From positions 248,001 to 312,000 of IMG/VR virus record IMGVR_UViG_3300027749_002876: DNA of 64,000 bases; one strand, given 5' to 3'. The stretch's first letter is position 1, and each line of letters starts with the position of its first letter. The translations under genes were made by a program, and so were the position numbers. Positions 22,686-56,307 of the stretch are shown here, in pieces. Below the pieces are notes generated by a model. It worked only from the letters and a program-made list of their open reading frames with translations, was not told the origin of the DNA and made no database searches.

Positions 22686-22716
22686 AATATATTATCCTTT
22701 TGTTTTGTTTGTGAGA

Positions 22717-23649: not shown

Positions 23650-23680
23650 ACTATGTTATCCTTTTGTTTTGTTTGTGAGA

Positions 23681-28399: not shown

Positions 28400-29341
28400 T
28401 TATGCGTAACCGTAACTTGCGGCTGCTAGTCCACTTCTAGCAGTACCGACACCTGTAGTATCTGTAGCAACTACCCCGGTGTTTGATACTAGGTTGGTCA
28501 ACGATAGATAACTTTCTCTACCCCCGTATCCAAATATAGCAGTATCAACTCCATAGCCAGCGGCTGCTAGATAAGTTCTACCAGTACCGACAGCGGTAGT
28601 ATCTGTAGCAACAACTCCTGTGTTTGATACTAGGTTGGTCATTCCGTAATACGGGCTACCACCAGCTCCTAAACCAAATCCAAAGATAGCTTTATCGGTG
28701 CCAAAAGTTGCGGCGGCTAACGCATATCTGGCCTGCCCTACACCTGTTGTATCTGTAGCAACTACACCTGTATTTGATACTTTATTGGTTACTGATGTAG
28801 TGGTAGGCGTAGCAGAGTATCCATATCCAAAAATAGCTTTATCGGTACCATAACCTGCGGCTGCAGGGTTACTCCTAGCAGTGCCAACACCGGCTGTGTC
28901 GTTAGCAACTACACCTGTGTTACTTACTAGATTGGTTATTGCTGTTCTAACCCAGCTACCATTATTGTATATACCATAACCAAAGATGGCTTTATCTGTT
29001 CCATAGCCTGCGGCTGCTAGTCCACTTCTAGCAGTACCGACACCTGTAGTATCTGTAGCAACTACACCGGTATTTGATACTTTGTTGGTTATTGCGGTCT
29101 GTGGAGTACCATATCCATATATAGCTTTATCACTACCGTAGCCTGCGGCAGCTGGTTCGCTTCTAGCTGTACCAACACCTGTAGTATCTGCGGCAACTAC
29201 CCCTGTGTTACTTACTAGATTGGTCATTGATAAAGAAGGACCATTAGTACCATATCCAAATATTGCCTTACTTGTTGGGGGAGGAGGTTGTGGTGTTACA
29301 CTCAATCCACCCGTAAATGTTAGTCCACCTGTAAAATCCAT
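28400..29341 (-). CDS. six-repeat Kelch-like beta-propeller protein, copy 4
   Basis: same six-repeat architecture. Confidence 0.8.
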   Translation of the reverse strand: MDFTGGLTFTGGLSVTPQPPPPTSKAIFGYGTNGPSLSMTNLVSNTGVVAADTTGVGTARSEPAAAGYGSDKAIYGYGTPQTAITNKVSNTGVVATDTTGVGTARSGLAAAGYGTDKAIFGYGIYNNGSWVRTAITNLVSNTGVVANDTAGVGTARSNPAAAGYGTDKAIFGYGYSATPTTTSVTNKVSNTGVVATDTTGVGQARYALAAATFGTDKAIFGFGLGAGGSPYYGMTNLVSNTGVVATDTTAVGTGRTYLAAAGYGVDTAIFGYGGRESYLSLTNLVSNTGVVATDTTGVGTARSGLAAASYGYA

Positions 29342-29372
29342 AATATATTATCCTTTTGTTTTGTACTTCATA

Positions 29373-30317
29373 TTAAGTTGATCCGTAACTTGCGGCGGCT
29401 AGATGATACCTAGCAGTACCCACACCGGTTGTATTTGTAGCTACTACACCAGTATTTGATACCAGGTTGGTTATGGATGTGACATTAATCACACTACTAT
29501 ATCCATATCCAAATATAGCTTTATCATTATTATAAGTTGCGGCAGCTAATCCAAGCCTTGCAGTACCAACTCCAGTTGTATCCGTAGCAACAACACCAGT
29601 GTTTGATACTAGATTAGTTACTGCTGTATAACTAACGCCACCATTAAGAAAGCCGTAGCCAAATATGGCTTTATCAGTTCCATAACCTACGGCTGCTAGC
29701 TCACCTCTAGCAGTACCAACACCGGTAACATCATTGGCTACTACACCCGTATTTGATACTAGGTTAGTTAGTGAATAAGTTACGCTAGATTGAGTAGTAC
29801 CATAACCAAATATAGCAGTACCAGTTCCATAAGTTGCGGCTGCCAATCCAACTCTAGCTGTACCAACACCTGTAACATCATTTCCAACAACACCCGTATT
29901 TGATACTAGGTTGGTCATTGAATAAACGCCACCACCACCATAACCAAAAATAGCTTTATCTGTACCATAACCAGTGGCCGCAAGATTATTTCTAACAGTA
30001 CCAACACCAGTTGTATCTGTAGCAACAACACCTGTATTTGACACTAGATTAGTTATTGATACAGTACTTGCTCCAGTATATCCATATCCAAATATAGCTT
30101 TGTCGTTTCCATAGCCTGCGGCTGCTAGATAGTATCTAGCAGTGCCAACACCGGTAGTATCACCTGCAACTACACCTGTATTTGATACTTTGTTAGTCAT
30201 TGATACTGAGGGTGTACCTCCATATCCAAAAATAGCATATGTACTATATGAGGGTGGAGGTAGAGTTACTGAGTAACCACCACTAAATGTTACACCTGAA
30301 AAAACCATATCTGCCAT
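29373..30317 (-). CDS. six-repeat Kelch-like beta-propeller protein, copy 5
   Basis: same architecture; GATAAATA at 30336-30343 and AAGGAG RBS. Confidence 0.8.
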   Translation of the reverse strand: MADMVFSGVTFSGGYSVTLPPPSYSTYAIFGYGGTPSVSMTNKVSNTGVVAGDTTGVGTARYYLAAAGYGNDKAIFGYGYTGASTVSITNLVSNTGVVATDTTGVGTVRNNLAATGYGTDKAIFGYGGGGVYSMTNLVSNTGVVGNDVTGVGTARVGLAAATYGTGTAIFGYGTTQSSVTYSLTNLVSNTGVVANDVTGVGTARGELAAVGYGTDKAIFGYGFLNGGVSYTAVTNLVSNTGVVATDTTGVGTARLGLAAATYNNDKAIFGYGYSSVINVTSITNLVSNTGVVATNTTGVGTARYHLAAASYGST

Positions 30318-30352
30318 AATATATCTCCTTTAATGTATTTATCAGAAAAGAA

Positions 30353-30375
30353 AAAAGGCTCAAAAAGAGCCTTTT
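30353..30375 (-). terminator. intrinsic terminator, AGGCTC/GAGCCT family
   Basis: identical hairpin to 27321-27342. Confidence 0.75.
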
Positions 30376-30392
30376 ATAGTAGCATATATTGA

Positions 30393-31292
30393 TTACGCTA
30401 CGAATGGAGTGTATTCAATACCAGTTGTTGCTAGTCCAACTAAACCAATAGTTGTTTCAAAACTAGCTAATTCACTAGCAATAACTAATACATCAGCTTG
30501 ACTATACTTGTTAGTAGTCATCCAGTTTGTCAATGCAGTTACATCAGCTAATGTAGCAGTTGTACCCATTACATTTTTGTAAACGTGCTTGATAAATGTC
30601 TCATCGCTAACACCACCGGCATCAGTTTTGTAAGTGTCAGTAGCTAATAATGCTGTAGCTAACTGTTTGTTTGTCCAACCTGAATCAGCTAAATAGATAC
30701 CAATACCTTCATAAGCTTTGGTAACATCAGCAACTCCTAATGCGGCAGCTAGTAATGCGTATACATCACCTGCACGACCTGTAGCATCATAAGCAATAGC
30801 TTTGTCTGTGAACACAACACGTTCGTGGTCAGCAAGTTTGATTTCTAAATTACTAACTAATGTGCTGGCTAATGTTACCGCACTTGTAGTTTTAGTTGTA
30901 GTGAACTCTGTACTTGCACCGCCTGCTACATAAGTGTCAATACCAGTTGTACCAGTAACATCAACTACTACATCAACTGTGCCATCGCCAACACGACCTG
31001 TACCTACTACACCAAATGTAGCAATCTTACCTAATGTACCAACAGTAGCAACTGTAACGATTAAGTTGTTAGCAACTGTACCGCCTAATGCTGTACCAGC
31101 AAGAGTGATGGTATCACCAGCTAAGTAGCCGTGACCTGCACTTGCGGCTAATGAATCTAATACAACGGAATATACTCCGTTAGTTTTTGTAACATCAAAT
31201 GCGGCTTCAACACCTGCGCCACCTGTTAATCCAGTGATGTTTTGATAGGTAGTGTTTACCGGTTTGTCTTTGATTGTAATTGTAGTTGTCAT
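30393..31292 (-). CDS. S-layer-like protein with DUF4214-like C-terminal domain
   Basis: Start moved to MTTTITIK (AAGGAA RBS); ERVVFTDKAIAYD and SDETFIKHVYKNVMG resemble DUF4214 proteins; TTGACA-18-TATACT at 31325-31354. Confidence 0.6.
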   Translation of the reverse strand: MTTTITIKDKPVNTTYQNITGLTGGAGVEAAFDVTKTNGVYSVVLDSLAASAGHGYLAGDTITLAGTALGGTVANNLIVTVATVGTLGKIATFGVVGTGRVGDGTVDVVVDVTGTTGIDTYVAGGASTEFTTTKTTSAVTLASTLVSNLEIKLADHERVVFTDKAIAYDATGRAGDVYALLAAALGVADVTKAYEGIGIYLADSGWTNKQLATALLATDTYKTDAGGVSDETFIKHVYKNVMGTTATLADVTALTNWMTTNKYSQADVLVIASELASFETTIGLVGLATTGIEYTPFVA

Positions 31293-31384
31293 AAATTTCC
31301 TTTTTATATAAAAATAACTCAATAAGTATATAGCGTTTCTACTAGTACTGTCAATACTAATATTTTACGTAGGTGTGATTAGGA

Positions 31385-39532: not shown

Positions 39533-40471
39533 TTATATACTATAATTTGAGGCGGCTAGTGCATATCTAGCAGTACCAACACCAGTAACGTCATTAGCAA
39601 CTACACCGGTGTTTGATACTAGGTTAGTTATTGCTGTTACACTTGCAGGTGAAAGTATCCTTCCATATCCAAATATTGCAGTATCTAAACCATAACCTGC
39701 GGCTGCTAGAATATATCTAGCGGTACCAACACCAGATGTATTAGTTGCAACTACACCTGTATTTGATACTTTATTGGTTATTGAAACATTTGGATTTCCA
39801 CCATAACCAAAAATAGCTTTATCTGTGCCATAAGTTGCGGCTGCTAATTGAGTTCTGGCAGTACCAACACCTGCAGTATCAGTAGCAACTACACCGGTAT
39901 TACTTACTAGATTGGTTATTGAAACTGGACCAACTGCGCCGTCTTCTCCAAATCCAAAAATTGCTTTATCTGTACCATAACCTGCGGCTGCTAGTGCATA
40001 TCTAGCAGTACCAACACCGGAAACGTCGGTGGAGACTACACCTGTGTTACTTACTAGGTTAGTTACTGCTGAGTAGGAGTAGGTATATCCATATCCAAAT
40101 ATAGCTTTATCAGTACCATAACCTGCCGCTCCTAGTTGACTTCTAGCAGTCCCTACTCCCGTAGTATCTGTAGCAACTACCCCTGTATTACTTACTAAAT
40201 TGGTCATTGATACAAGTCCGGAGTTGTTAAATCCATATCCAAATAGTGCTTTATCAGTACCATAGCCCGCTGCCGCTAGTTCATCTCTAGCAGTACCGAC
40301 TCCTGTTGTATCGGTTGCAACAACCCCAGTGTTACTTACTAGATTAGTTATTGATATATATGATGGGCTGGAATATCCATATCCAAAGATTGCTTTATAA
40401 GAGGGTGGGGGAGGTGCTGTAATTGCAAATCCACCACTGAAATTTACACCTGAAAAAATTATGTCTGCCAT
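39533..40471 (-). CDS. six-repeat Kelch-like beta-propeller protein, copy 6
   Basis: same architecture; GATAAATA at 40491-40498 and AAGGA RBS. Confidence 0.8.
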   Translation of the reverse strand: MADIIFSGVNFSGGFAITAPPPPSYKAIFGYGYSSPSYISITNLVSNTGVVATDTTGVGTARDELAAAGYGTDKALFGYGFNNSGLVSMTNLVSNTGVVATDTTGVGTARSQLGAAGYGTDKAIFGYGYTYSYSAVTNLVSNTGVVSTDVSGVGTARYALAAAGYGTDKAIFGFGEDGAVGPVSITNLVSNTGVVATDTAGVGTARTQLAAATYGTDKAIFGYGGNPNVSITNKVSNTGVVATNTSGVGTARYILAAAGYGLDTAIFGYGRILSPASVTAITNLVSNTGVVANDVTGVGTARYALAASNYSI

Positions 40472-40502
40472 ACTATATTATCCTTTAATGTATTTATCAA
40501 AA

Positions 40503-40528
40503 AGAATAGGCTCCGAAGAGCCTATTCT
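40503..40528 (-). terminator. terminator of tmRNA locus, AGGCTC/GAGCCT family
   Basis: AGAATAGGCTC-TTCG-GAGCCTATTCT on minus strand plus T-run. Confidence 0.8.
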
Positions 40529-40529
40529 G

Positions 40530-40870
40530 CTATTTTCTGTTACGAGGGATAACTCCCCTAGCTGCCTTTATCAGGCCGCAATGCTAAACTGTGAGTCGTT
40601 TGCGGTTACTTTTTTTGCTTCTACGACCGGGTTGCCCCAATCCTACGGCTTCTGCTTTGCCGAGCTGTCCACTCTGTTACTTGTTGCCCTGTCGAAACTT
40701 TTCAGGCCCATCATAAAAAGAATATTAAAAAAACCAAAATAATAACACTCAATATTCCACATGTATATTGATATTTTACTTCAGGATCCATATTGTCTCC
40801 TTATGGTGGACCTGGGGAGATTCGCACTCCCGTCCAGAACACCTTTCCCGTTACTTCATACAGCAATAAC
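40530..40870 (-). ncRNA. ssrA: circularly permuted (two-piece) tmRNA
   Basis: Acceptor piece ends GACGGGAGTGCGAATCTCCCCAGGTCCACCA (3' end 40804). Coding piece starts GGGCCTGAAAAGTTTCGAC (40709). Acceptor stem GGGCCTG/CAGGTCC has G3:U70. Tag frame 40603-40568 reads ANDSQFSIAA then TGA TAA. Outer ends approximate. Confidence 0.92.
40711..40791 (-). CDS. 26-aa hydrophobic peptide encoded in the tmRNA intervening segment
   Basis: TAAGGAG-5nt-ATG; MDPEVKYQYTCGILSVIILVFLIFFL; ends 1 nt before the coding-piece 5' G. Confidence 0.6.
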   Translation of the reverse strand: MDPEVKYQYTCGILSVIILVFLIFFL

Positions 40871-40871
40871 T

Positions 40872-43800
40872 TCAATTGTATTTAGCATTGAAATACTTTT
40901 TTAACCAAGGCCAATCATAACTTAGACGCAATTTGCCTAACTCACCATTGACTTGTTCAACATATTCTACAGCATGTTTTGCACCATCGATACTATATTG
41001 GGCATAGTCACCCTCACCCACAGTTGACCATATCTTTAATCGTTGTTTGCTATCAGGACTATCATCTAGTTTTAACTTGATAACTTCACGGAAACTGGTA
41101 CGCCATGTACTAAATTCATCAGTGTTATATCGTGCTACACCCGAATTAATCTCTACAACTTCATGCTCATTGTCTAATGTAAAGTCCAAACCTTTACCCA
41201 TATTACTTAACGTAATCTGTTTATGGTATGCAATCATAGCTTGGTGACCATACACTAATCCATTTACAGGGTTACTTGCGTAGAAGATATAATGTTTAGG
41301 TATCTGTAATCTATCTGGTTGCCATGTAAAATCAAATTTACTATTGATACGTAACTTAGCAAACACTGTAAACATCCAAGGTGTTTCACTAGCTGTTGCG
41401 GCTGCATGATAAGCCTGAACACGACCATTTACACCATCAACACGAACAACACGATTAGGCAATCCTTTAGTCACGTTTAGTAAGTGTTCATAGTTCTCAT
41501 CAGCTCCAACTTCACCGTTGCTAAGGAAAACTATATCCAGTGGCTTAGACTGTATTAGTTTATCAGCTTTACTGATGTATGGATAATCATACAACTCTTT
41601 CTTAACATATTCTTTAGCTTCTTTCGGCACAATAATACGTGTGCCACCGGTAGTAGTAATTAATATGTTTTTAGATTCTTTAGACCATAAACTTATTGGT
41701 TCATTGTCAACAACTTTTATTTCTTTGTTGTCTTCCGTGACAAACGTAGCATAAGGCCAATTAAAATCAGTATTAGTAATAGAGACATGTGTATCGCTTT
41801 CAGTTATAAAGTTTGGAGCAGGTAAACGCTTTACTCTTTGATGTTGGTTAAAGTTAATTTTCTCAATTTTTTCTAAATTATCTAATTCTTCTATCAGCAT
41901 ACGTAATTTATTGACATTGATAAAGAATGTATCACCAAACTTTTGCAAGTTACTAGGGAATACATGCAATTGTTCCAGTGAAAACGGATCACATATGTAT
42001 GTAAAATCAAAATTAGTATAGTCACATATAGAACTACATACCCAAACATAATGTTCTTTTTTAATACCTAACTCATACAACATATTTTTTAATGTAGTTA
42101 GGTAATCATTATCATATTTAATAACTTCAACATTCTTTTTAGTTTTATTTTCTAATAATGATGTAATATTATCAGTAGTATCATTACCGTAATCAATCAA
42201 ATAAACGTCATACAAGCAGTTACTAGCGACCGCTCGCTTTGTTTTTACAAAGTTAAGATTACTTAAATGTTCTATAATTTTAATATGTTTAGTATCTTCT
42301 ATGAATGTTTCTTTATTGACCATAAAGGTAGTTCCCCAATGGCTCCATTGTGTTCCAAATATATGAACCATTTTCATTTGCCATGGGCTAGGATAATAGT
42401 CAAATGTAAAATTTGTATAATCTAATTCACTATTCAGTATCCAACATACTTCAGTTTCAGACTTGTTAAGACAACGATTAATAGTATCAACCCAGCTATT
42501 TAAATAACGTGTTTTTTGTATTTTTGGATAGCGTTGTTTTAATTCTTCGAATCTTTGTTGGCTTTCATTGTTGTTCTTATCAACAAAAAACATTGATAGG
42601 TTACTGTCGATTTCCACTGTTTGTTCTTCAACATAGTTAAATTCTCTATGACCCATAGTGTATAATGGTCCGTTAACATAATAAGTTTGTGTGTTCTTAC
42701 TATATTCGTTACCAAATACATTTATGTGCCTAAAGTTTTCACTATTTGGTCTCCAGTTAAAATCAAATTTATCATAATTTAAGTCAGGGTTGATGACCCA
42801 AAATACTTCATCCGGATGTTCTGCAATCAAATCCTCAAGTGTTGTTTTAAGTTTATAACGATTAACTGTATTACGGTTTGTAGTAATTGTAGTTTCTGTT
42901 CGTTCCATCAACACAACTTCAGTTGCGCCTGGCACAGTGTATCTAGGACCATTATCTGCCCACTGGTAAATTTGAGGAGGACTATGTGGATTAGGTCTCC
43001 AACTAAAATCAAATGTATTGTAATCGTCTACATTACTCACATGCCAATTTTTTAATTCTGGTTTAGTAATAGCAACAATGCTTTTAACATATTTTCGTTC
43101 TGATGCCCCATAAGTCCAATATTCTACTGTAGGTTCTACTGTAGCGTCATTCCATTTGTTACCAAAAACATATACATATGGTGGACTTTTGGGATCAGGT
43201 CTCCATGAATAATCAAAATTGTCAACAGGTATTACTACTAGCCACTTGTTCATATCAGGTAATGTAGTTGCTACTACATCATCCATATATTTAAATTCAG
43301 TAGCACCTGGACAAGTGTAAGTGATAGTAGGTTCACGTACAGCATCGTTATATTTGTTACCCCATACATAGATATACGCAGGTTCACGCGGATCAGGTCT
43401 CCAGCTAAAATCAAATGAAGATTTATCAACTGGTATAAGAGTTTCCCATCTATTAAGCTGTGGCTTTACATCAACTATACCTACATATTTGCGTTCTGTT
43501 GCACCTGGTACATGATATTCTAATGTAGGTTCTACTTCTGCCGGAACATATTTGTTTCCCCATGTATATATGTAGGGTTTTTCAGTCTCATCGGGATGCC
43601 AACTAAGTTGGTCTTCTACTACAGCCTGATGTATAACCCAATTATCCTTTGTAGGCAGTGCTTTTGCTCTGGTTGCGTCAATATATTTTACAGCACTGTT
43701 CTCATTTACACCGTCTGCATAATATACAGGGCCGCCCGTCTTTTGCCATTGTGTTCCAAATTTATATATGTATGGTATATCTTCGATATCAGGATGCCAA

Positions 43801-45301: not shown

Positions 45302-46396
45302 ATGCCTAAAAAGCATTTATCAATAACAGGAACACGCATGAGCAGAACACAATTTGAATTTACACCAGGAAAACCAATTAGAACATACGGAGCCAATGGC
45401 TCATGGAGAGATTGGAGCACCGATGAACTTGTGGGGGCAAAATTAAATTATCTATCAGGTTGGAAATGTGGTGCAGGCGTTGATAGCTTATTCATCGATA
45501 TGGATGGTGGTGTATGGACAGCTAGTTGTCGTGTAGGTGGCAAATTAGGTAGTGTTTGGGATGACTTTTCAGTTCCGGAAGATTGGATTGATTGTACTAA
45601 AAATGTATGTAGTTGCGGTGCTGACTTGTTTATCCCAAAAACTAGTCTTGTTGAATTCAAGCCATTACTACGAAAAGGACAAGAATTGCCAACTCAGGGT
45701 GAAATGTTAAATGAACAACTAACTGAGTTTGTAGGTATGGAACGAACACACGCTAGTACTCAAAAACAAATATATTGGGAAATAGGTCGTAGATGTAATT
45801 ATGATTGTAGTTATTGCTGGCCTTGGATACATAACAATACTGACCCACACAAGCCATTGGAAGATTTAATGAGAGCTACTCATTTGATTGAGAAAAAATT
45901 CACCAAAGGTGAAAGCGTTAACTTCATTATTAGTGGTGGTGAACCCACTGTTAATAAAGATTTCTTAGATTGGTTACGTTATTTAAATGCATGCGGACAT
46001 CATGTGAGCTTGCATAGTAATGGTAGTCGATTGCCTGACTATTACAAAGAAGTTATACATTACGGTGATTTGAACTTGAGTGTTCATTATGAGTTCTATA
46101 ACAGAGAAAAGTTTGTTAAAGTGGTTGAGGCTATTGCAAAAGAAAAATCAGAACACGGTGGTTGTGGTCACTTAGAAGTTAAGTTTATGATGGCTCCGCA
46201 CAACCGTGATGAGACATTGAGCTTAGAAGCTGAATTAAAAGAATTACCTCACTTTGTAGATTACTGCACCTGGGCTATTGTTCCTATACGAGGAGACATG
46301 AATAACAAAATCAGTTCACCTGATACCGGTTCAGGCAGTGAAGTTATGGAAGGCTACACTAAGGAAGATTACATTTTATTCGGAGATCGTAAATAA
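45302..46396 (+). CDS. radical SAM enzyme with N-terminal SPASM-like domain
   Basis: CNYDCSYC, SGGEPT, SNGSR; N-terminal WKC...C...CTKNVCSC. Confidence 0.9.
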   Translation: MPKKHLSITGTRMSRTQFEFTPGKPIRTYGANGSWRDWSTDELVGAKLNYLSGWKCGAGVDSLFIDMDGGVWTASCRVGGKLGSVWDDFSVPEDWIDCTKNVCSCGADLFIPKTSLVEFKPLLRKGQELPTQGEMLNEQLTEFVGMERTHASTQKQIYWEIGRRCNYDCSYCWPWIHNNTDPHKPLEDLMRATHLIEKKFTKGESVNFIISGGEPTVNKDFLDWLRYLNACGHHVSLHSNGSRLPDYYKEVIHYGDLNLSVHYEFYNREKFVKVVEAIAKEKSEHGGCGHLEVKFMMAPHNRDETLSLEAELKELPHFVDYCTWAIVPIRGDMNNKISSPDTGSGSEVMEGYTKEDYILFGDRK

Positions 46397-46397
46397 T

Positions 46398-48320
46398 ATG
46401 GAAAAAGACGAATGGATGGTAGAAACGTTAATACCAAGAAACACCGGTATACGCAAGAAGCCTAACATACAAGCTGTAACATATTTTAATGCTACTAGAA
46501 AAACTAAATTAGTACTAGCTGTAATGGGGTGCTGGGCTATTTGGATGCCACCATATAACTTAGGAAGACTAGCTTCATTAACTAGATCATCCGGATATGC
46601 AACAAAATGTTTTGATTTCAATGTTCAAAGTTATCACGACTTTAGAGAAATGTATCCTGGTTCTGATTTAGAGGATGCTTGGGGTACAGGTAATTGGTGG
46701 TGGTGGAAAGAACGTTATTTTGACAAAATACATGAAAGAAACATTCCACTACTAGAAAAATATGTGGATGAAATATTAGCAGAAGATCCGGATATTGTAG
46801 GATTAAGTTTATACTTTACTAACAGATTGCCGTCAGAGTGGGTAGCTAATGAAATTAAAAGACGTAGACCAAGTGTACTAATTATATTTGGTGGACCTGA
46901 ATGCCATTCAGAAGATTACGTTCCGCCCGAATCGGTCGACCACTGGTTTACGGGAGAATCTGAACAATTACTATTAGATTTTTTAGAGAAATACGAAACG
47001 GGTGAGAAGATTACTGAACGTCATTTGGGCAGTTTATATAGTTCTACTAGAATTGATATTGATAGTTTACCCTTCCCCGACTATTCTGATTTTGACTTTT
47101 CTAAGTATTTAGGACATTTATCAATTAATACTGAAATCAGCAGAGGGTGTATTGCTAAATGTAGCTTTTGTTCCGAAACATATTATTGGAAATATAGAGA
47201 TAGAGAAGCACATTCAATATTAGATGAGATAGAGCACCAAGTAAAAACCAACGAAATTGTTGCTGTTTCATTTGTTGATAGTTTAGTCAATGGCAATCTA
47301 AAAAGTCTCAAAGGTTTTGCTGAAGGATTAATTGATCGTAAATTAAACATTAGATGGTGGGGATATGCCAGATGTGATGGACGTATGGATGGTGCTTACT
47401 TTGATTTGCTTCGTGCTAGCGGTTGTGACGGATTCAGTTACGGAGTAGAAAGCGGTAGCCAAAAAGTATTAGACTTAATGCAGAAAAAAGTTAAAGTATC
47501 TGATATTAATGAAAATCTATATCATTCAGGTAGAGTGGGAATGACAGCTAATGCTAATTGGATTATCGGTGCGCCCGGAGAAGATATTGAGGCATTAGCG
47601 CATAGTATGAACCTTATTTGGAATCATAGAAATAATATACATTCAATTAGTCCAGGCAATGGTTTAGGTGACACGTTGGGTACTGACTATGATAATAGAG
47701 AAAAATACAACATAAACCCTCGTAACAAACCTTTCTTAGGACATTGGTACTCATTAGACTGGACTAATACTCAATTAAACAGATACATTAGAATGAAACT
47801 ATTTGTTATTCTTTTAAAGATAGCAAAAGATCATGGAGTGATTGTTAATCTTAATGGTGACAAAGGTATAACCTCACATTACGATTTAAAATTTGATGAT
47901 GACAATTATATTGTTGATAATATTGAATATGAGAATTTTGAATACCATCTATTAAAAACTGGTTACGGTTTTTTTGCTGACACCGTTGTGAATGAAGTAT
48001 TTTCTTTGTTCAGAATATTGTGGAGAATTAAAGGTGGTTTTGAAATTACGCTAAACTTTGAGCAAGAGGTTGATGTTGAGGCATTTGGTGGATTATTAAC
48101 TCATACACCACATACTTATAATGCAACACATTATTTCAAAATAGATAAAGAGGGTAATTTTCAATCTAATAATACATATGAGTTTTTTTATGAACCAGAA
48201 TCTTGGGATAGAATTGAGAATAAGAGTTTTAAATATGAAGGTAATGTTTCAGGTTATTGGGGTGAAGTAAAGATTGCTCCTGTGAAACGTCACATATGGA
48301 TAGAGAACAATATAAATTAA
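46398..48320 (+). CDS. cobalamin-binding (class B-type) radical SAM enzyme
   Basis: PPYNLGRL, DIVGLS, IIFGGPE, GESE, LPFPDY, SRGCIAKCSFC, GVESGSQKVL; start moved to MEKDEW (GGAG RBS). Confidence 0.9.
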   Translation: MEKDEWMVETLIPRNTGIRKKPNIQAVTYFNATRKTKLVLAVMGCWAIWMPPYNLGRLASLTRSSGYATKCFDFNVQSYHDFREMYPGSDLEDAWGTGNWWWWKERYFDKIHERNIPLLEKYVDEILAEDPDIVGLSLYFTNRLPSEWVANEIKRRRPSVLIIFGGPECHSEDYVPPESVDHWFTGESEQLLLDFLEKYETGEKITERHLGSLYSSTRIDIDSLPFPDYSDFDFSKYLGHLSINTEISRGCIAKCSFCSETYYWKYRDREAHSILDEIEHQVKTNEIVAVSFVDSLVNGNLKSLKGFAEGLIDRKLNIRWWGYARCDGRMDGAYFDLLRASGCDGFSYGVESGSQKVLDLMQKKVKVSDINENLYHSGRVGMTANANWIIGAPGEDIEALAHSMNLIWNHRNNIHSISPGNGLGDTLGTDYDNREKYNINPRNKPFLGHWYSLDWTNTQLNRYIRMKLFVILLKIAKDHGVIVNLNGDKGITSHYDLKFDDDNYIVDNIEYENFEYHLLKTGYGFFADTVVNEVFSLFRILWRIKGGFEITLNFEQEVDVEAFGGLLTHTPHTYNATHYFKIDKEGNFQSNNTYEFFYEPESWDRIENKSFKYEGNVSGYWGEVKIAPVKRHIWIENNIN

Positions 48321-48330
48321 GGTATATTAA

Positions 48331-49716
48331 ATGAATAACACTAAAACGTTTTGCAACATGGCATGGGATTATCCTATGTTCTTTATGTTTAAAAATGCAG
48401 TAGGTTACTGCTGTAGAACACCTAGAATAGATATTGATAATGAATTACTAGAGGAGATGAAAGAGGACTTTTGGTCTAATCATCCTAGCTTTGTCAATAG
48501 AAGAAAAGAATTAATCAATGGTATAAAAAGTAAAGATTGTGATACCTGTTGGCAATTAGAAGATGCTGGATTTAAAAGCTCTAGGAATGATGACCACTTC
48601 AATATGTTTATGAAGAAAAATTATCCCAATTTTAATGAAAAATTAGACCAGCGTTTATTTAAATTCTTTCCAGGCATTGAACGTAGTAACTATTCAAATG
48701 TAATTGAAATTGTATTGAATAACACATGTGATGCAAAATGTACATATTGTAGTGAACATTATAGTACTCAATGGGTAACTGAAAAAAAGAAGTTTGGTGG
48801 AATAAGTCCGTATTATACTGACATGAATGACAGAAATCCTAGAGCAGAAGAACTGTTCTGGTCATGGTATGAAAACAAAGTATTACATACTAATAAACGT
48901 TTTGGATTCATTGGTGGTGAACCGTTAATTATTGATGCATTATATGAATGTTTTGATAAATTAATTGAAATACATGAAAGAAAACAACTATCAATTCAGT
49001 CTGATGCGGATAAAATGGAACTATGTATTACTAGTAATATGAATACACCTCCTGCATATTTTGAAAAGTTTATGGGGTATGTGAAAAAACTAGAAAAACA
49101 TTTCAGAATTATCATTCAAGTAAGCGGTGAAAACGTAGGTGACGATTTAGAATATATACGACACGGTGTTAAATGGAAACGTTGGTCTAGAAATGTTGAA
49201 TATTTATTAGACAATACTAACATTACGCTAAACTTTTTACCATGCTTAAGCTTGTTAACTATTCCTAGATTTAACGAATACATACAATATGTAAACAAGT
49301 TAAACAAAAAATACGGAGTAATGAAAATACATCAAAACATTGTTACATGGCCAGTAGAACAAAGTCCTATGATAGCTCCTAAAGAATTTTCCCAGTACTT
49401 TGATCCATGCATTGACAGTGTGAATGAAATTCTTGCCGGAGAAATTAAGGATCGATTTATACGAGGTGAATATGAAAACCTATTATTGTGGCTTACAAAA
49501 ACACGTGAAGCTATTATAAGCAATCCAAGTGCAAGTGAACCTGTTGAGAATGCTAAAAAGTTTTATTCTTTTTTTAATGAGTTAGATCGTAGAAGAAATA
49601 CTAGTGTATTGAAAATATTTCCTGAAATAAAAGAATTTTATGACACAGGTAAACAGTTATATGAAGGCACAGTACAACCACGCATTATACCAATTGTAGC
49701 TGTGACAAATGAATAA
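48331..49716 (+). CDS. radical SAM enzyme with N-terminal twitch-like Cys domain
   Basis: FC...YCC...CDTCW; CDAKCTYC; IGGEPL. Confidence 0.88.
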   Translation: MNNTKTFCNMAWDYPMFFMFKNAVGYCCRTPRIDIDNELLEEMKEDFWSNHPSFVNRRKELINGIKSKDCDTCWQLEDAGFKSSRNDDHFNMFMKKNYPNFNEKLDQRLFKFFPGIERSNYSNVIEIVLNNTCDAKCTYCSEHYSTQWVTEKKKFGGISPYYTDMNDRNPRAEELFWSWYENKVLHTNKRFGFIGGEPLIIDALYECFDKLIEIHERKQLSIQSDADKMELCITSNMNTPPAYFEKFMGYVKKLEKHFRIIIQVSGENVGDDLEYIRHGVKWKRWSRNVEYLLDNTNITLNFLPCLSLLTIPRFNEYIQYVNKLNKKYGVMKIHQNIVTWPVEQSPMIAPKEFSQYFDPCIDSVNEILAGEIKDRFIRGEYENLLLWLTKTREAIISNPSASEPVENAKKFYSFFNELDRRRNTSVLKIFPEIKEFYDTGKQLYEGTVQPRIIPIVAVTNE

Positions 49717-50938
49717 CAATTTACCAAATAGTGCAACATTGTGTACACAATTATGGAATCATGCTGTTGTTGATATAGATAAGAAAAAAATCAGAGCATG
49801 TTGTAAAACTCCTTCTATACAATTAACAGATAATGATATTGCTACATACAAGCAAGATGCTTTTATTAATTTACCAGTAATACGTGAAGCAAGAAAAGAA
49901 ATGCTTGACGGTGAGAAGCCAGCTATGTGCCGCACCTGCTGGGATTTAGAAGCCAAAGGAAATTTTAGTTTTAGAACTGGGAATTTTGCTTGGCAAAACT
50001 ATTTTAAAGATTTAAATTACAGTGATTATACATTATCAAATCATCCAAATGATTTAGATATACAGTTGGATAACTATTGTGATTTAAAGTGTTTATATTG
50101 CAATGAAGAATTTAGTAGCCAATGGCAAGCAGAGAAACAAAAGTTTGGTGATATACAGTCTTTTATCCCTATACAAACAGCACATGATGACTTTGTTAAA
50201 ATTTTCTTTACATGGTTTAACACAGTAAAAGATAACTTTGAACGTATTGCTTTTTTAGGCGGGGAGCCATTAATCAGTCCTCGTTTCTATGAGTTACTTG
50301 ATATGATTCTTGAAGCGTACAATAATAAATTCCCCGATGAATTGGTGATTAATATCATAACTAATCTGAATACTACATCAAAATACTTAGAAAAATTTAT
50401 TGACACTATCAATCGTTATAAAGATAAAGTTAAGTTTAACATAAACATTTCACAAGAAGCATATGGGCAGCAAGCTGAAGCTATTAGACATGGTTTAGAT
50501 TTTAACAGATTTATGTTTAATTTTAATGAGTTAGCCAAAATTAAAGGGATTGTATTAAGCACTATAACTACTGTCAATGTATTGAGCCTAAGTACATTGT
50601 ATAAGTATTTAAAATTTGTGACTGAGATTGAAAAAGAACACAATGTTCACGTTATCATTTATCCAAACTTAGTGAGCTTTCCAGAACATTTACAAGTTTC
50701 ATTAATGGATAAACAGTTGGGTAAAGAATATATTGATTTGGCTATTGAAGCTTTATCCGAAAAAAATCACCAGGGGTACATTGACTTCTTAAATACATTA
50801 TACGATAAGTTTGTCTTTGAAGAAATCAGAGATACAGATAACCACAATTCTCTTATAAAAGAACTAGAAACTCTGTCTGTTAGACGAAACGTAAATTATA
50901 AGGAAATATTTAATGAGTACAAATACATCTGGGGATAA
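49709..50938 (+). CDS. radical SAM enzyme with N-terminal twitch-like Cys domain
   Basis: LC...ACC...CRTCW; CDLKCLYC; LGGEPL. Confidence 0.88.
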   Translation: MNNNLPNSATLCTQLWNHAVVDIDKKKIRACCKTPSIQLTDNDIATYKQDAFINLPVIREARKEMLDGEKPAMCRTCWDLEAKGNFSFRTGNFAWQNYFKDLNYSDYTLSNHPNDLDIQLDNYCDLKCLYCNEEFSSQWQAEKQKFGDIQSFIPIQTAHDDFVKIFFTWFNTVKDNFERIAFLGGEPLISPRFYELLDMILEAYNNKFPDELVINIITNLNTTSKYLEKFIDTINRYKDKVKFNINISQEAYGQQAEAIRHGLDFNRFMFNFNELAKIKGIVLSTITTVNVLSLSTLYKYLKFVTEIEKEHNVHVIIYPNLVSFPEHLQVSLMDKQLGKEYIDLAIEALSEKNHQGYIDFLNTLYDKFVFEEIRDTDNHNSLIKELETLSVRRNVNYKEIFNEYKYIWG

Positions 50939-52508
50939 CTCAGTTTGGGATTCACTGACACATGAACATGCTGAGTCAGGAAAAGTGTACAACGAAACAC
51001 TCGAGGTTATAACACCACCATTACAAAACTACATGGATGAACCTACCTTCCCTGCACAAGTTGATCCAGCTAACGTATCTTGTAAATTCAAATGGGATTA
51101 TCCTATTGTTAACTTGATGAGCGGTCATAGTAGAACATGTTGCCGTGTACCAAAACAAGTTATAACTCAACAAGACCTTGATATGTATGGCATAGATGCT
51201 ATTCAAAATTTACCATACGAACAAGATAGACGTAGAGAAAAGATTTTAGGTATTACACATGTTGATTGTGAATCTTGTGTAAGATTAGAATGGAATGGTG
51301 CTATTAGCCCTCGTAGTAATATGCAAGGGTTTGTTAATGAGTGGTTAATTACCCATCATAATGCATATCCACATAAAGTAAAAAATGTACAGAAATGGCA
51401 CGTTGACCATATGCCAACAAATGCCAATGACTTACCCTTCAATCATCCATTACTAAGAGCAGATCATCCTGATATGTTAGAAATTATCTTGGGTAATCAT
51501 TGTGATTTGAAATGTACATATTGTAGTATTCATTACAGCACTCAATGGCAAACTGAATTAATTAAGTTTGGTGATATCAAAAAAGAAGATATTGACCATC
51601 ATTTTCCGGCAGCGCCTGAAAAATTAGAACCTGTATTCTGGGAATGGTTCTATGATGTTGGTCGTCATTCTAGTAAAGTTATTAACATTCTAGGTGGCGA
51701 GCCTACATATATGCCAAAGTTTTATGATGTTATGGAAAAGTTAACAGCGGCTTACAAAGACTTAGGTAAGAAAGATAGACATGTTGAATTAGGTATATTA
51801 TCTAACATGAACACTAAACAACCACAAATGGATCGTTTTTTAAATCTATTACCTGAACTTACTAAGTATCTATTTTTAAGATTACAACCTAGCATTGAAG
51901 CTGTTGGTAAGAAAGCAGAATATATTAGATATGGTTTAGATTGGAATCGATTTGAAGGTAACATCAAAAGAATATTAGGAGAACGATCTAAGTATGGATT
52001 AACTCCTGACAACTTTGGCATGGGATTTCAAATGGCTTTGAATAGCTTTAGTATTTCAAGTTTACCAGACTTTATTCATTGGTCTAATGAATTGATTAAT
52101 GAGTTTGACTTTGAAATTGGATTGATGAAAAATGTGGTTAGTTTTCCTAGACACCATAATCCACACGTACTTACTCCTGACTTTGGTACTTACCTTGAAC
52201 AAGCACGTGATTATATTGAAATATATGCCGAGCGCAATGATAGACAAATCAGAAGATTATCAGCATTGCATCATGGTGTCCCCCCTCATGGTAGTTGGGT
52301 GAGCTATAATGTAGATTTATTAAACAGTTTAGTAGATTCTGTCAGTAGTGATTATCGCAGTGAATATGATGTTGAAAGCCGTGGCCATTGGTATCATTTT
52401 GTAGAATCTATGAAGCATAGAAGAAATATTGATGTATTAGAATATTATCCTGAAATGACAGAATTTTATAATTTGTGCAAGAAACATGCACAACATGGTG
52501 ATAAATAA
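50913..52508 (+). CDS. radical SAM enzyme with N-terminal twitch-like Cys domain
   Basis: SC...TCC...CESC; CDLKCTYC; LGGEPT. Confidence 0.88.
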   Translation: MSTNTSGDNSVWDSLTHEHAESGKVYNETLEVITPPLQNYMDEPTFPAQVDPANVSCKFKWDYPIVNLMSGHSRTCCRVPKQVITQQDLDMYGIDAIQNLPYEQDRRREKILGITHVDCESCVRLEWNGAISPRSNMQGFVNEWLITHHNAYPHKVKNVQKWHVDHMPTNANDLPFNHPLLRADHPDMLEIILGNHCDLKCTYCSIHYSTQWQTELIKFGDIKKEDIDHHFPAAPEKLEPVFWEWFYDVGRHSSKVINILGGEPTYMPKFYDVMEKLTAAYKDLGKKDRHVELGILSNMNTKQPQMDRFLNLLPELTKYLFLRLQPSIEAVGKKAEYIRYGLDWNRFEGNIKRILGERSKYGLTPDNFGMGFQMALNSFSISSLPDFIHWSNELINEFDFEIGLMKNVVSFPRHHNPHVLTPDFGTYLEQARDYIEIYAERNDRQIRRLSALHHGVPPHGSWVSYNVDLLNSLVDSVSSDYRSEYDVESRGHWYHFVESMKHRRNIDVLEYYPEMTEFYNLCKKHAQHGDK

Positions 52509-52512
52509 AAAA

Positions 52513-53187
52513 ATGAATATTACATTTACGTTAGATCCAAACAATAGATCGATATACTATATCAATTTAGAAGTAAGCCCTGAAATACTCGAAGAACTCA
52601 AGCAGGAAAATTGGGTACCTATTACTCCTACTCATTTAGATGAATATTATACAAAACGTCATCGTCTAGATGATGGATACGGAATAAAAGGTTTATTAGT
52701 ACGTAAAGTATACACTTTTATGAGGTCTTCTGAATTTAAAAAAACTATGTTAGACTTGATATGGAAAGATATGACATTTCAACATAAATGGGGTCCTCGT
52801 CTTAACTATGAAAAAATTAACAATTGTACCATTGTTGAATTTGGTTTTGATAAAGATTGTCCTGGATTTAGTACAGACCTTCATTTAGAAAATCGTTGTC
52901 AAATTGCATTTGGTAAGATTTTTTTTGTACCTGAGGATGCGGAAAATAAAAGCTCATATTTTTATAGAACAATAAATCGTGATGATCCTTTAAGAGTCCC
53001 TGTAGGTATGGGACTAGGTTGGCTATGTGTCAATACACATGAAGGTTGGCATGAAGGTTATAACGCTAGTGAGGAAGATAGATATTCATCTAGTATAAAT
53101 TTTACATTTGATATATTTAACAACGGCCATGTAAAAAGCGATGACGCCACTATTAAATATATACGTGGCGAAGCTGCTTCTATTTAA
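52513..53187 (+). CDS. 2OG-Fe(II) oxygenase-like protein
   Basis: DCPGFSTDLHLE, NTHEGWHEG, R-Y-S distal motif; start moved to MNITF after GATAAATA (52500-52507). Confidence 0.55.
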   Translation: MNITFTLDPNNRSIYYINLEVSPEILEELKQENWVPITPTHLDEYYTKRHRLDDGYGIKGLLVRKVYTFMRSSEFKKTMLDLIWKDMTFQHKWGPRLNYEKINNCTIVEFGFDKDCPGFSTDLHLENRCQIAFGKIFFVPEDAENKSSYFYRTINRDDPLRVPVGMGLGWLCVNTHEGWHEGYNASEEDRYSSSINFTFDIFNNGHVKSDDATIKYIRGEAASI

Positions 53188-54371
53188 TAATTTATTAATT
53201 TCCATAATTCAGGCAAATAGTCTTTCATATCTGTTTGTCTATAGTCATCGTGTAATTTTAAAAAGTTAATTAACTTAATTCTATATTCTTCTGCATTAGA
53301 ATATTCATATCCATCATCATTTGGTAGATTAATGAAATTAATGATAAATTCTTTGTGACCGGTGTCAGGAGATTTTAAATTATACTTACTAAAATCTATC
53401 TTATCTATTTTTTCTACTAATTTATTTTTTAATCTTGATGGTAAGTTTTTAAGACATAACATTTGTGGATCATGTATTAGATTTGCAAACATAATAAAAC
53501 AACCATACTTACTTAATTCATCTAATATTTCTTCTAAGTTTAAAATATTTAAAATACTAGCAGTTGGATAAATACCAACAAAGAAAGGGTGTGGTAATAC
53601 AGCATATTTTTTGATGTTATCATCTATTTTATTCCATTTTGCTGGCCAACGTTGATATTCAAATCTAGTACCAATATCATCTATACTCAAAAACAAATTT
53701 ATTCTTTTAAATTGTTTAAGTAATTCTATTAGTTCATCAGTATATACTGTACCATTTGTATTCAGTGTTAAACTAATATTTTTAGCTAAATTTTTATCTA
53801 CTAAAAATTTAATGTAATCCAATACTTCATCATTGATTAATGGTTCACCGCCGTATATTAATAGATATTCAAGATTGACTGACATATCATGCAATGCTTG
53901 TAATCGTTCACCTTCAAATTTATCTAATGATACCGTTTCATAGTAATCAGCTGGTATCAACGGTATATTTAATTTATTAAATTGTGTTTGCCATAAACTA
54001 CTTAGATAAGGACTACATATGCGACAAGCCAAATTACATTTATTAGATAGTTTTAAACTAAGGTAATTTACAACAGGCTTATCAATTCTATACCTGTTGT
54101 TATATTGATTTTGTTGACGTAAACTAAAAACTCCGGCTTCTTCTTCAGTCCAACATCTTATACATTCTTCTGGTTTCTCCCCTGCTAAGAATTTCTTTCG
54201 TAATGTATTAACATCTTCACTATTCCAAATAGTATCTAATCTATCTTCAAGTATATTATACATCCCGATCTGATCGGGTTTTTTAATTACTTTACGTATT
54301 TTACAGCATACTTGACATGAGCCTTCTGGACTTATTTCCAAACTGTTAAAGGGCATTGAACAAAAACTCAT
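53184..54371 (-). CDS. twitch-domain radical SAM enzyme
   Basis: FCSMPF..VCC..CIRCW; CNLACRIC; YGGEPL; NTNGT. Confidence 0.9.
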   Translation of the reverse strand: MSFCSMPFNSLEISPEGSCQVCCKIRKVIKKPDQIGMYNILEDRLDTIWNSEDVNTLRKKFLAGEKPEECIRCWTEEEAGVFSLRQQNQYNNRYRIDKPVVNYLSLKLSNKCNLACRICSPYLSSLWQTQFNKLNIPLIPADYYETVSLDKFEGERLQALHDMSVNLEYLLIYGGEPLINDEVLDYIKFLVDKNLAKNISLTLNTNGTVYTDELIELLKQFKRINLFLSIDDIGTRFEYQRWPAKWNKIDDNIKKYAVLPHPFFVGIYPTASILNILNLEEILDELSKYGCFIMFANLIHDPQMLCLKNLPSRLKNKLVEKIDKIDFSKYNLKSPDTGHKEFIINFINLPNDDGYEYSNAEEYRIKLINFLKLHDDYRQTDMKDYLPELWKLINY

Positions 54372-55594
54372 TCTAATAAACCTTTCAGTTCAGGGAACAA
54401 TTCAATTGTATTTTCTTTTCTAATACCATCTAATAATTTAGTTTCTATTTTTAAATTATCAATTTCAGTTTGTGTATCGTCTGAATACATATACTTTATA
54501 ACCTTATGTATTTCATTTATAGTAACATCAGTAAGAGTATATGATTCACATTTTTTAGCATATTCTAGCCAATGCTGTTCTACTAATTCTTTTTTATCTT
54601 TAGGTAAAGATGTAAGATTGTACATTACTGGGTCTGTTAGTATGTTATAATAGATGTTATCAATATGAATTATACCTTCATCAGCTAAAAACAAATGCAT
54701 TTTAGGTAAATGAAACGCATTCAATATGCTAATGGTAGGACATAATTGTAAATAGATATCTGGACAATTTTGTTTAATTGTTCTTAGATTAGATAAGATA
54801 TTATCCCATGTACTGCCATTGCGTATGATGCTGGCTTGTTCCCAACCAGCATCTAAACTTAGTGATAGTCGGACTTTCTTAAATAAATTCCAATAATCAG
54901 TTACCACATTTTTATCTTTAAATGTTAGGCGTGTACAATTTGTATTGTAACGCAATACCAAATCAAATTTCTTATGCTCAACTAGAATATCTAATATTTC
55001 GTAATGTTCTGCCAATAGTAATGGCTCTCCACCACAAAAATATATTTCTTCAATACTATCTAAATTGTTTTTGAAAAACTCAAAAAAATCATTCTTTTCA
55101 TCAAACGCTTTTTGCAATACAGGAACTTTTCTTTTCAAACTAGATACTGTTTCTTCTGCTATGCTACTACTATTGATATGGTCACATGTTCTGCATTTTA
55201 AATTACAGAGATTACTAAATCTTACGTCCCATGTGGCTATTTTATTTCCAACAAGATTGTTATTTTCATCAAATTCTAGTTTTTTAAATGCATCACCATA
55301 ATTTCTGTTACTAAACCATCTATAACTATGAGCACCATATGTTTGTTCAGGCAATGAACAACGATTACAGGACTCTGGTAATTTAGGTCCATTAATCATT
55401 TGTTGTTGCATTTCTGTTAGTTTGACATTAGAATTAGAATATATGTCAGACATTTTTTGAGTTTTTGTATCACCTAATATATAATTTTGATTGATACAAC
55501 ATGGGATGGCTCTTCCGTCTGTCCAAACACAAGCATGAATAAAAGGAAGAACACAAAAATGGTTAGAATTAAGTAAATGTTCTTTATCAATCAT
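54368..55594 (-). CDS. twitch-domain radical SAM enzyme
   Basis: FCVLPF..PCC..CNRC; CNLKCRTC; CGGEPL. Confidence 0.9.
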   Translation of the reverse strand: MIDKEHLLNSNHFCVLPFIHACVWTDGRAIPCCINQNYILGDTKTQKMSDIYSNSNVKLTEMQQQMINGPKLPESCNRCSLPEQTYGAHSYRWFSNRNYGDAFKKLEFDENNNLVGNKIATWDVRFSNLCNLKCRTCDHINSSSIAEETVSSLKRKVPVLQKAFDEKNDFFEFFKNNLDSIEEIYFCGGEPLLLAEHYEILDILVEHKKFDLVLRYNTNCTRLTFKDKNVVTDYWNLFKKVRLSLSLDAGWEQASIIRNGSTWDNILSNLRTIKQNCPDIYLQLCPTISILNAFHLPKMHLFLADEGIIHIDNIYYNILTDPVMYNLTSLPKDKKELVEQHWLEYAKKCESYTLTDVTINEIHKVIKYMYSDDTQTEIDNLKIETKLLDGIRKENTIELFPELKGLLE

Positions 55595-56307
55595 GTTGGT
55601 TGTTTGCTTATTAAAATATTTATATAGTCTTGTACTTCTTTGGCATTCTCTATCATTTCATAAGGGTTATCGGGTAATTGTTTTTCTAAACGAATATTAG
55701 TAATAATTGGAATTAAAAAATATCTAGTCAAATCATAAACAGCACGTTCATATCTTACAGTAAAGGTAGTATCCAGTTTATATTCCATAATTAATTTATC
55801 AAAATTTATAATTCTATTGTATAACCATGACATATTTGGAAAAAGTTTGGTAGGTATATGAATAGGATTATCATGTGTGCCGTGAAGTGAATTCCATTTA
55901 TTAGTAGAAAGACCAAATACATAACTTACCAAGTGATTTTCTATATTTTCTCTTTTTATAATTAGAAATTTAAAATTTAATGCATGTAGCTCATTTAATA
56001 TCTTTGTTGTAAAAGGTATATTATCTTCAGTTAAAAATAATTTTATTACCAATGATTGATCTTGATTACCAGTTTTTAAAAGGTTAAGTACATAATCAAT
56101 CTGCACTTCATGGGAATCGTATTTTGTAAAATCAGAAGGTATTGCACGTAATAAACGATTGTCATATTGTTCTATACAATAGGGATGTCCAACCGTAAAA
56201 GGCTCTGCTAAATTTTTCATGCCTGATCCTATTGATCTAGCTATCAATTCTGAAACATACTGACTACCAGATCTGGGTAGACCTATCAGACAAATTCTAG
56301 TAGTCAT
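55591..56307 (-). CDS. sulfotransferase-like protein
   Basis: GLPRSGS PAPS-binding loop, EPF, KREN...VS, VRYE. Confidence 0.7.
   Translation of the reverse strand: MTTRICLIGLPRSGSQYVSELIARSIGSGMKNLAEPFTVGHPYCIEQYDNRLLRAIPSDFTKYDSHEVQIDYVLNLLKTGNQDQSLVIKLFLTEDNIPFTTKILNELHALNFKFLIIKRENIENHLVSYVFGLSTNKWNSLHGTHDNPIHIPTKLFPNMSWLYNRIINFDKLIMEYKLDTTFTVRYERAVYDLTRYFLIPIITNIRLEKQLPDNPYEMIENAKEVQDYINILISKQPT

Follow-up and report, generated by a model that had tools for sequence, protein, structure and literature searches.

A permuted, two-piece tmRNA gene of a giant freshwater phage with a putative mini-gene in its intervening sequence

On the minus strand of the window (the whole stretch of 64,000 nucleotides analysed here) there is a complete, circularly permuted tmRNA gene at 40905..40498, whose CCA-bearing acceptor piece lies upstream of the coding piece that carries the 5' end of the mature RNA. 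The parts of the gene are collected in Table 1. ARAGORN called a permuted tmRNA at c[40480,40896]. Among the Rfam covariance models, RF04321 (tmRNA_permuted) scored 98.9 bits (gathering cut-off 47, E=5e-18) at 40865..40571, and RF01850 (beta_tmRNA) scored 95.4 bits (gathering cut-off 84, E=1e-27) at 40905..40503, over model positions 1-331 of 331. Nevertheless, the RF01850 score is only 11 bits above its cut-off, and both models flagged 3-4 non-canonical pairs in one inter-piece helix. Immediately upstream of the resume codon the two models pair CGGC with either GCCG or GUCG, and a GNRA hairpin can be seen there; inspection of this region, by eye only, assigned no pseudoknot.

Table 1. Features of the permuted tmRNA gene and of its surroundings (window positions)
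Feature	Position (strand)	Description	Evidence
Promoter-like site	40875..40904 (-)	TTAAAA-18 nt-TACAAT just upstream of the acceptor piece; coincides with the promoter-like 5' part of the RF01850 model	Consensus scan, 9 of 12 matches, a pattern match only; RF01850 alignment starts at 40905
Acceptor piece (3' piece of the mature RNA)	40804..40868 (-)	5' strands of the inter-piece helices (GCUGU 40864..40860; UGUUCUG 40841..40835), T-arm GGGAG/UGCGAAU/CUCCC (40831..40815), acceptor 3' strand CAGGUCC (40814..40808), discriminator A and encoded CCA (40807..40804); 5' end near 40868 inferred from the promoter	ARAGORN 3' tRNA domain; Rfam alignments; covariation in 89 of 89 relatives
T-loop	40820..40826 (-)	UGCGAAU; second base G (40825) instead of the usual U, matched by A at 40699 in the D-loop analogue	Covariation in 135 unique family genes
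Intervening sequence (IVS)	40710..40803 (-)	94 nt between CCA and the tmRNA 5' G; by analogy with other two-piece tmRNAs, removed on maturation	ARAGORN domain limits
Shine-Dalgarno (SD) sequence	40797..40802 (-)	AAGGAG, 5 nt before the ATG of the IVS ORF and starting 2 nt after CCA	Sequence
IVS mini-ORF	40711..40791 (-)	26 codons plus TGA, MDPEVKYQYTCGILSVIILVFLIFFL; acidic N-terminus and one hydrophobic helix; the stop ends 1 nt before tmRNA G1	Translation; homologues in the same slot
Second promoter-like match	40767..40739	Within the spacer; not favoured	Consensus scan
Coding piece (5' piece of the mature RNA)	40498..40709 (-)	G1 (40709), acceptor 5' strand GGGCCUG (40709..40703; 7 bp with CAGGUCC, including G3:U70), D-loop analogue AAAAGUUUCGA, helix strand CAGGGCA (40691..40685; pairs with UGUUCUG), upstream structured region, tag frame, 3' hairpins and terminator	ARAGORN 5' tRNA domain; RF01850 full-length alignment
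Tag reading frame	40568..40603 (-)	Resume codon GCA (40603), ANDSQFSIAA (40603..40574), stops TGA TAA (40573..40568)	ARAGORN; family tags
Intrinsic terminator	40498..40528 (-)	11-bp stem AGAAUAGGCUC/GAGCCUAUUCU with UUCG loop (40528..40503), then UUUUU	Terminator scan; last hairpin of the RF01850 model
Large terminase	7971-9518		E=4e-105

The preliminary description had placed a phage-encoded permuted tmRNA at 40530-40870, with a 7-bp acceptor stem including G3:U70, a T-arm, a pairing between the two pieces, the tag ANDSQFSIAA with a double stop, and no smpB in the window. This observation is confirmed, since every one of these elements is present. The covariance-model search, which had been named in advance as a check, was positive, although the gene is somewhat longer than first described because of the promoter-like site and the terminator.

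Regarding the genomic context, the window corresponds to positions 70903-134902 of a 170,963-bp IMG/VR record rated 45% complete by CheckV. An exact search with the 3' piece found one other record, a 524,565-bp IMG/VR contig rated 100% complete, and the shorter record is 99.995% identical to its positions 177,099-348,061. Besides the terminase, the window holds a virion protein, and the phage DNA is present in five freshwater metagenomes. The 524.6-kb contig has 56 tRNA genes in two arrays and a single tmRNA. However, this contig has mirrored arms (about 18-153 kb and 399-512 kb) that are collinear in reverse at only 69-86% identity, each with ClpX, ClpP and a tRNA array, whereas the CheckV figure for the shorter record implies about 380 kb. 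The contig may therefore be over-assembled and 56 tRNAs may be an over-count, but the tmRNA lies in the single-copy centre either way. Pfam and PHROG searches of the two ORFs flanking the tmRNA (312 aa and 1447 aa) gave nothing informative.

We also examined which partners of trans-translation the phage encodes. SmpB (PF01668) was found neither in the 171-kb record nor in the 524.6-kb contig, even at E<=1, and AlaRS was absent as well. By contrast, ClpP (E values of about 1e-80 and 1e-78 were obtained) and ClpX (zinc finger + AAA_2 + D2-small) are each present twice with canonical domain architecture. Four other huge phage genomes (280-364 kb) with a verified permuted tmRNA also lack SmpB, so that it is absent in 5 of 5 such genomes, and three of these four have ClpP. 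Therefore, the phage brings the tagging RNA and the protease for a tag ending in -AA, and it must borrow the charging enzyme and SmpB from its host.

The gene belongs to a large beta-type family that we found only on uncultivated phage contigs. A degenerate pattern for the 3' piece hit at least 120 IMG/VR contigs, 108 of which carry a complete permuted tmRNA according to ARAGORN, with tags such as ANDSQFALAA, and tags of the form ANDxxF/YxxAA are conserved in more than 100 relatives. With two further scans we parsed at least 152 loci, which gave 135 unique genes. Of 15 sampled relatives, 14 exceeded the RF01850 cut-off, at 87-150 bits. No member of the family was found among 50,697 deposited phage genomes (INPHARED), where blastn searches with our gene and two other family representatives gave only short hits to the tRNA-like domain, in Stenotrophomonas and Xanthomonas phages; hence no cultured relative provides a host anchor. 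In 185,579 species-representative bacterial and archaeal genomes, scanned with the pattern of the variant with G in the T-loop only, there were six hits and none was in a bacterial isolate. Five of them are ordinary one-piece tmRNAs of CPR MAGs that share only the 3' end, and the other one is a permuted gene on a phage-like contig, with tRNAs and proteins similar to our phage, in a Haliscomenobacter bin that has its own standard tmRNA. We did not take this last hit as evidence for the host, and the SD usage of the phage argues weakly against a Bacteroidota host. A betaproteobacterial host is only inferred from the gene type.

These data bear on the possibility that the gene is a mere passenger, that is, host DNA picked up by imprecise prophage excision at an ssrA attachment site, host contamination or a mis-assembly, with no role in the phage. 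tmRNA genes are common integration sites and ssrA fragments occur in prophages (PMC9004378), and 12 of the 120 IMG/VR hits to the 3' piece lie at contig ends and lack a full gene. However, the gene of our phage is complete with its own promoter-like site and terminator, sits in the centre of a giant phage genome between phage ORFs, is identical in two assemblies and has a phage-like G+C content. In addition, its permuted G-variant class was found in no bacterial isolate among 185,579 species genomes and the family shows purifying covariation. We therefore rejected this explanation, which appears very unlikely.

The structure is under selection. In 89 unique relatives, G3:U70 is invariant, the acceptor pairs left free by our pattern (4 and 5) are GC, CG or AU with no mismatch, and the variable T-stem pair is GC or AU in 89 of 89. 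The inter-piece helices were recovered by the consensus fold and show GC/AU and CG/UA swaps, to which our sequence conforms apart from one consensus pair that is U-U. Both the T-loop and the D-loop analogue of our gene are unusual (AAAA-G rather than ..GG in the latter). Across the 135 unique genes, the second T-loop base and the base before the conserved D-loop G are either G/A (72) or U/G (63), without exception. On a tree built with those two sites masked, each of them changes 17 times, and there are 12 independent co-switches on supported branches, all of them concordant (sign test, p=0.0005). The CPR one-piece tmRNAs obey the same rule. This fits the tRNA G18-Psi55 tertiary contact, although this assignment is our inference.

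The unexpected part of the gene is the intervening sequence. Immediately after CCA the minus strand reads U-AAGGAG-ACAAU-AUG, followed by the 26-codon ORF. The phage's own genes use SD-type sites (42% against 4% background). However, the spacer is T-rich, which favours hydrophobic codons in any frame, and therefore we rejected the hydrophobicity of the peptide as evidence of coding; moreover, 'AAGG' after CCA and 'UGAU' before G1 are conserved in the family regardless of ORFs. For these reasons we tested coding comparatively. Homologues occupy the same slot in the family loci that we numbered L311/L317 (MDPEVKYQYVCGILSVIILVFFIFFL), L361, L284 and L194/L292. They differ at codon positions 1/2/3 by 83/42/124 (p=1.6e-9), with 47 synonymous codon differences and an in-frame 12-nt indel, although this close family has only five distinct sequences. 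A related group of 22-23 residues gave 296/158/364, and seven other spacer-ORF families together gave 168/128/285 (p~1e-15). In the unbiased first scan, 19 of 83 unique spacers of 60 nt or more have an ATG-ORF covering at least 75% of the spacer, against 6.7+-2.3 in shuffles (maximum 13). The peptide was absent from the protein collection searched, but the larger cargos in the same slot of other family members are recognised protein families: an 86-residue Pfam CxxCxxCC protein (PF03692) sits inside a tmRNA that Rfam recognises across it, and a 122-residue protein belongs to a 119-member cluster. The second promoter-like match inside the spacer is not favoured because the spacers of relatives, which range from 20 to 382 nt, can be very short.

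It could be argued that the locus is maintained mainly as an expression and processing cassette for the peptide, in which the flanking tRNA-like structures recruit RNase P and 3' processing to excise a mini-mRNA while the tmRNA function is secondary or lost. The conservation of the ORF as coding, the exact filling of the spacer from just after CCA to 1 nt before G1 in many relatives and the diversity of the cargo genes would agree with this. Nevertheless, 64 of the 83 unbiased spacers of 60 nt or more, plus all the short ones, have no spacer-filling ORF and keep an intact tmRNA, and the tag frame, the helices and the tertiary pair are under constraint in ORF-bearing genes too. The cargo therefore looks like an add-on to a working tmRNA, and we regard the cassette reading as unlikely.

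Regarding expression, no RNA run contained this phage. When two freshwater metatranscriptomes were compared with the gene, RNA contigs 90-99% alike covered the coding piece at word depths up to 4,250 and 8,366, covered the acceptor piece only weakly (about 2-12) and did not cover the spacer, whereas a run of unknown kind did. These contigs are mostly 90-95% alike, so they come from relatives. The pattern is compatible with two mature pieces in those relatives, but it does not prove processing, because the spacer is not conserved and assembled contigs hide the ends.

Taken as a whole, our best explanation, in which we have high confidence, is a functional phage-encoded two-piece tmRNA gene of the betaproteobacterial structural type. 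One transcript would run from the promoter-like site to the terminator, both of which are known only as consensus patterns. Host RNase P would cut before G1, which is preceded by U, the 3' end of the acceptor piece would be trimmed to the encoded CCA and the spacer would be released, as inferred from the Caulobacter precedent. The pieces would stay together through the acceptor stem and the inter-piece helices, whose pairing is demonstrated by covariation. Host AlaRS would charge the RNA through G3:U70 and discriminator A, and host SmpB and EF-Tu would deliver it to stalled ribosomes; translation would resume on GCA and append the tag, and tagged chains would be degraded by ClpXP. What the sequence establishes here is the tag frame and the phage clpX and clpP genes, while processing, charging, SmpB binding, delivery, tagging and degradation are all inferred, and function would depend on the host. 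The likely benefit is extra ribosome-rescue and clean-up capacity in a phage that also brings dozens of tRNAs. In addition, the spacer is a small gene for a predicted single-helix membrane peptide, probably translated from the precursor or from the excised spacer RNA; its translation is inferred from sequence alone.

The interpretation given in the preliminary description, a phage-supplied ribosome-rescue RNA with a ClpXP-type AA tag, is supported: the identity of the gene rests on two covariance models, ARAGORN and family-wide covariation, the DNA is that of a phage, and the reading of the tag, which has a hydrophobic-Ala-Ala end (IAA), gains support from the phage's own ClpX and ClpP. Two qualifications apply, namely that this kind of gene is already published and that the suggested role against host mRNA-cleaving defences is pure conjecture. 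The spacer had also been treated as inert, whereas it carries a conserved small ORF. Alternatively, the RNA might be a decoy or inhibitor that engages host SmpB, AlaRS or ribosomes to shut down host trans-translation, as reported for the CDS-less tmRNA-like RNA of mycobacteriophage DS6A; a phage tmRNA form that inhibits endogenous tmRNA is cited in PMC11915505, and without an SmpB of its own the RNA of our phage must compete for that of the host. However, unlike the RNA of DS6A, this gene keeps a full tag frame with an Ala resume codon and a double stop, the phage carries ClpX and ClpP to use such a tag, and the conservation of the tag peptide across more than 100 relatives argues for selection on tagging. 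The decoy is therefore improbable.

Among the systems already described, the betaproteobacterial two-piece tmRNA (RF01850; Sharkady & Williams 2004, cited in PMC9004378 and PMC11915505) shares the permuted order, the arrangement of inter-piece helices, a post-tag hairpin, a terminator and a tag of the AND..F..AA type. Our gene differs in being encoded by a phage and not in a betaproteobacterial chromosome, in the G of the T-loop with its compensating D-loop A where the model consensus has U and G, in a 29-nt insertion upstream of the tag relative to the consensus, and in a protein-coding spacer of 94 nt where the model consensus has about 30 nt. It is thus structurally beta-type but not a bacterial member. 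Two-piece tmRNAs of cultured marine phages (OM43 phage Melnitz, pelagiphages, cyanophages) are also complete permuted ssrA genes, mostly aquatic, without a phage SmpB requirement being stated, and 53 unique two-piece tmRNAs were found among 18,146 phage genomes (PMC9004378); the gene of Melnitz is alphaproteobacterial-type with a glutamine riboswitch, whereas ours is beta-type and gave no riboswitch hit. Phages over 200 kb with many tRNAs and translation genes are reported to carry tmRNAs, found with ARAGORN (Al-Shayeb et al. 2020, PMC7162821), but that paper reports tmRNA together with SmpB in the data set and does not describe gene form, spacer content or a ClpXP link. The Caulobacter two-piece tmRNA (Keiler, Shapiro & Williams 2000, cited in PMC9004378) is the experimental precedent for one precursor cut into an acceptor and a coding piece that function together, but it is alphaproteobacterial-type and chromosomal and its intervening segment is simply discarded. 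A search of the supplement of the tmRNA database paper for phage counts by gene form found nothing.

As for other cargo in the removed parts of tmRNA genes, the 2025 tmRNA database paper mentions only a tRNA-Ala gene and a repeat inside intervening sequences, and homing-endonuclease genes occur in T-loop group I introns (PMC11915505). These show that such parts can host other genetic elements, but they are an RNA gene, a repeat or selfish intron ORFs, whereas here the cargo is a set of small, SD-led cellular-type ORFs lying exactly between the two tRNA-type processing sites, of which our literature searches found no report. A more speculative reading, which we consider possible but unlikely, is that the tRNA-type cuts that mature the tmRNA also excise a minimal mRNA from this cargo slot, which in our gene would be SD + 26 codons + stop + 1 nt. 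In other family members, those of the MFENWHWVY.WGI... and CPSCF...HKC families, the ORF has no stop before G1, and the former reads into the tmRNA. After RNase P cleavage their mRNA would be a non-stop message and therefore a substrate of the tmRNA it was cut from, in an ArfA-like feedback where the peptide accumulates only when trans-translation capacity is saturated.

The tmRNA itself is ordinary for a giant aquatic phage and adds one more case of phages importing translation-rescue functions. What appears to be new is the beta-type lineage seen only on uncultivated phage DNA, the pairing of the RNA with phage ClpXP in the absence of SmpB, the T-loop/D-loop covariation, which can guide structural work on the tRNA-like domain, and above all the protein-coding spacer. 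In this family, protein genes sit in the 'discarded' spacer of a permuted RNA gene, exactly between two RNA-processing sites. If these are translated, they are a new way of packaging and perhaps regulating micro-proteins, and an overlooked source of phage membrane peptides that gene callers miss.

Regarding the 524,565-bp relative (G001; loci L004-L030), two arms of about 135 kb are collinear inverted copies of each other at only 69-86% nucleotide identity, and each of them carries ClpX, ClpP and a tRNA array. The CheckV figure for the 171-kb fragment implies a genome of about 380 kb. The contig may be a chimeric or over-long assembly of two related phages, or a genome with mirrored paralogous arms. 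The coordinates of these arms and of the other features described here are collected in the table below.

Coordinates of the features in the window and in related or similar phage sequences
Sequence	Position	Strand	Feature
G001	about 17.8-152.6 kb		arm, collinear inverted copy of the other arm
G001	about 399-512 kb		arm, collinear inverted copy of the other arm
Window	21735-24637, 28400-31322, 39533-40471, 56304-58201, 60446-61396		ORFs of about 310-318 aa
Window	40471		ATG of the 312-aa ORF
Window	40472-40500	minus	promoter-like site TTGATA-17-TATAGT
Window	40699	minus	base before the conserved D-loop G
Window	40825	minus	second T-loop base
Window	45302-55594	both	cluster of radical-SAM-domain proteins (ORFs 45302-46396, 48331-49716, 49709-50938, 50913-52508, 53184-54371, 54368-55594 and neighbours)
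L218	6981-7055		tRNA with anticodon CTA
H1/H2, Stenotrophomonas phage vB_Sm_QDWS359	35026-35089		stretch similar to the acceptor piece or tRNA-like domain
H3, Xanthomonas phage Rb1	16297-16363		stretch similar to the acceptor piece or tRNA-like domain

Within the window, many ORFs of about 310-318 aa appear to be diverged paralogues, with 70-80% nucleotide identity in the self-comparison. One of them lies directly downstream of the tmRNA terminator, and its only match is phrog_27227, of unknown function. The promoter-like site, which matches 10 of 12 positions, lies directly after the tmRNA terminator, and its -10 element abuts the ATG of the 312-aa ORF, which would give a leaderless or very short-leader mRNA. 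The radical-SAM cluster comprises at least seven proteins and is next to the 1447-aa ORF that has no family match.

Among the IMG/VR relatives, some family members (loci L113, L135, L136 and L325) have tags of 27-29 residues ending in LAV rather than LAA (for example AKANTTVTVSGKNVKFSARTAKESLAV). This may be a different degradation signal, although it may also be an ARAGORN frame call that needs checking. In another relative, a 364-kb phage contig with direct terminal repeats (L218), the tRNA with anticodon CTA, called tRNA-Pyl by ARAGORN, lies about 900 nt from the permuted tmRNA, which hints at amber-codon reassignment or suppression in that relative. None of the 56 tRNA genes that ARAGORN lists in G001 has a stop-codon anticodon.

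We also found, in cultured phages, stretches of about 65 nt that are 78-81% identical to the acceptor piece or tRNA-like domain (the hits H1/H2 and H3). They are annotated as hypothetical protein or left unannotated, and they may be unrecognised tmRNA-like or tRNA-like elements.

Finally, the second T-loop base and the base before the conserved D-loop G covary perfectly in the 135 related genes, being U/G in 63 and G/A in 72, with 12 independent co-switches. The CPR one-piece tmRNAs follow the same rule, and this is probably a swap at the G18-Psi55-type tertiary contact.
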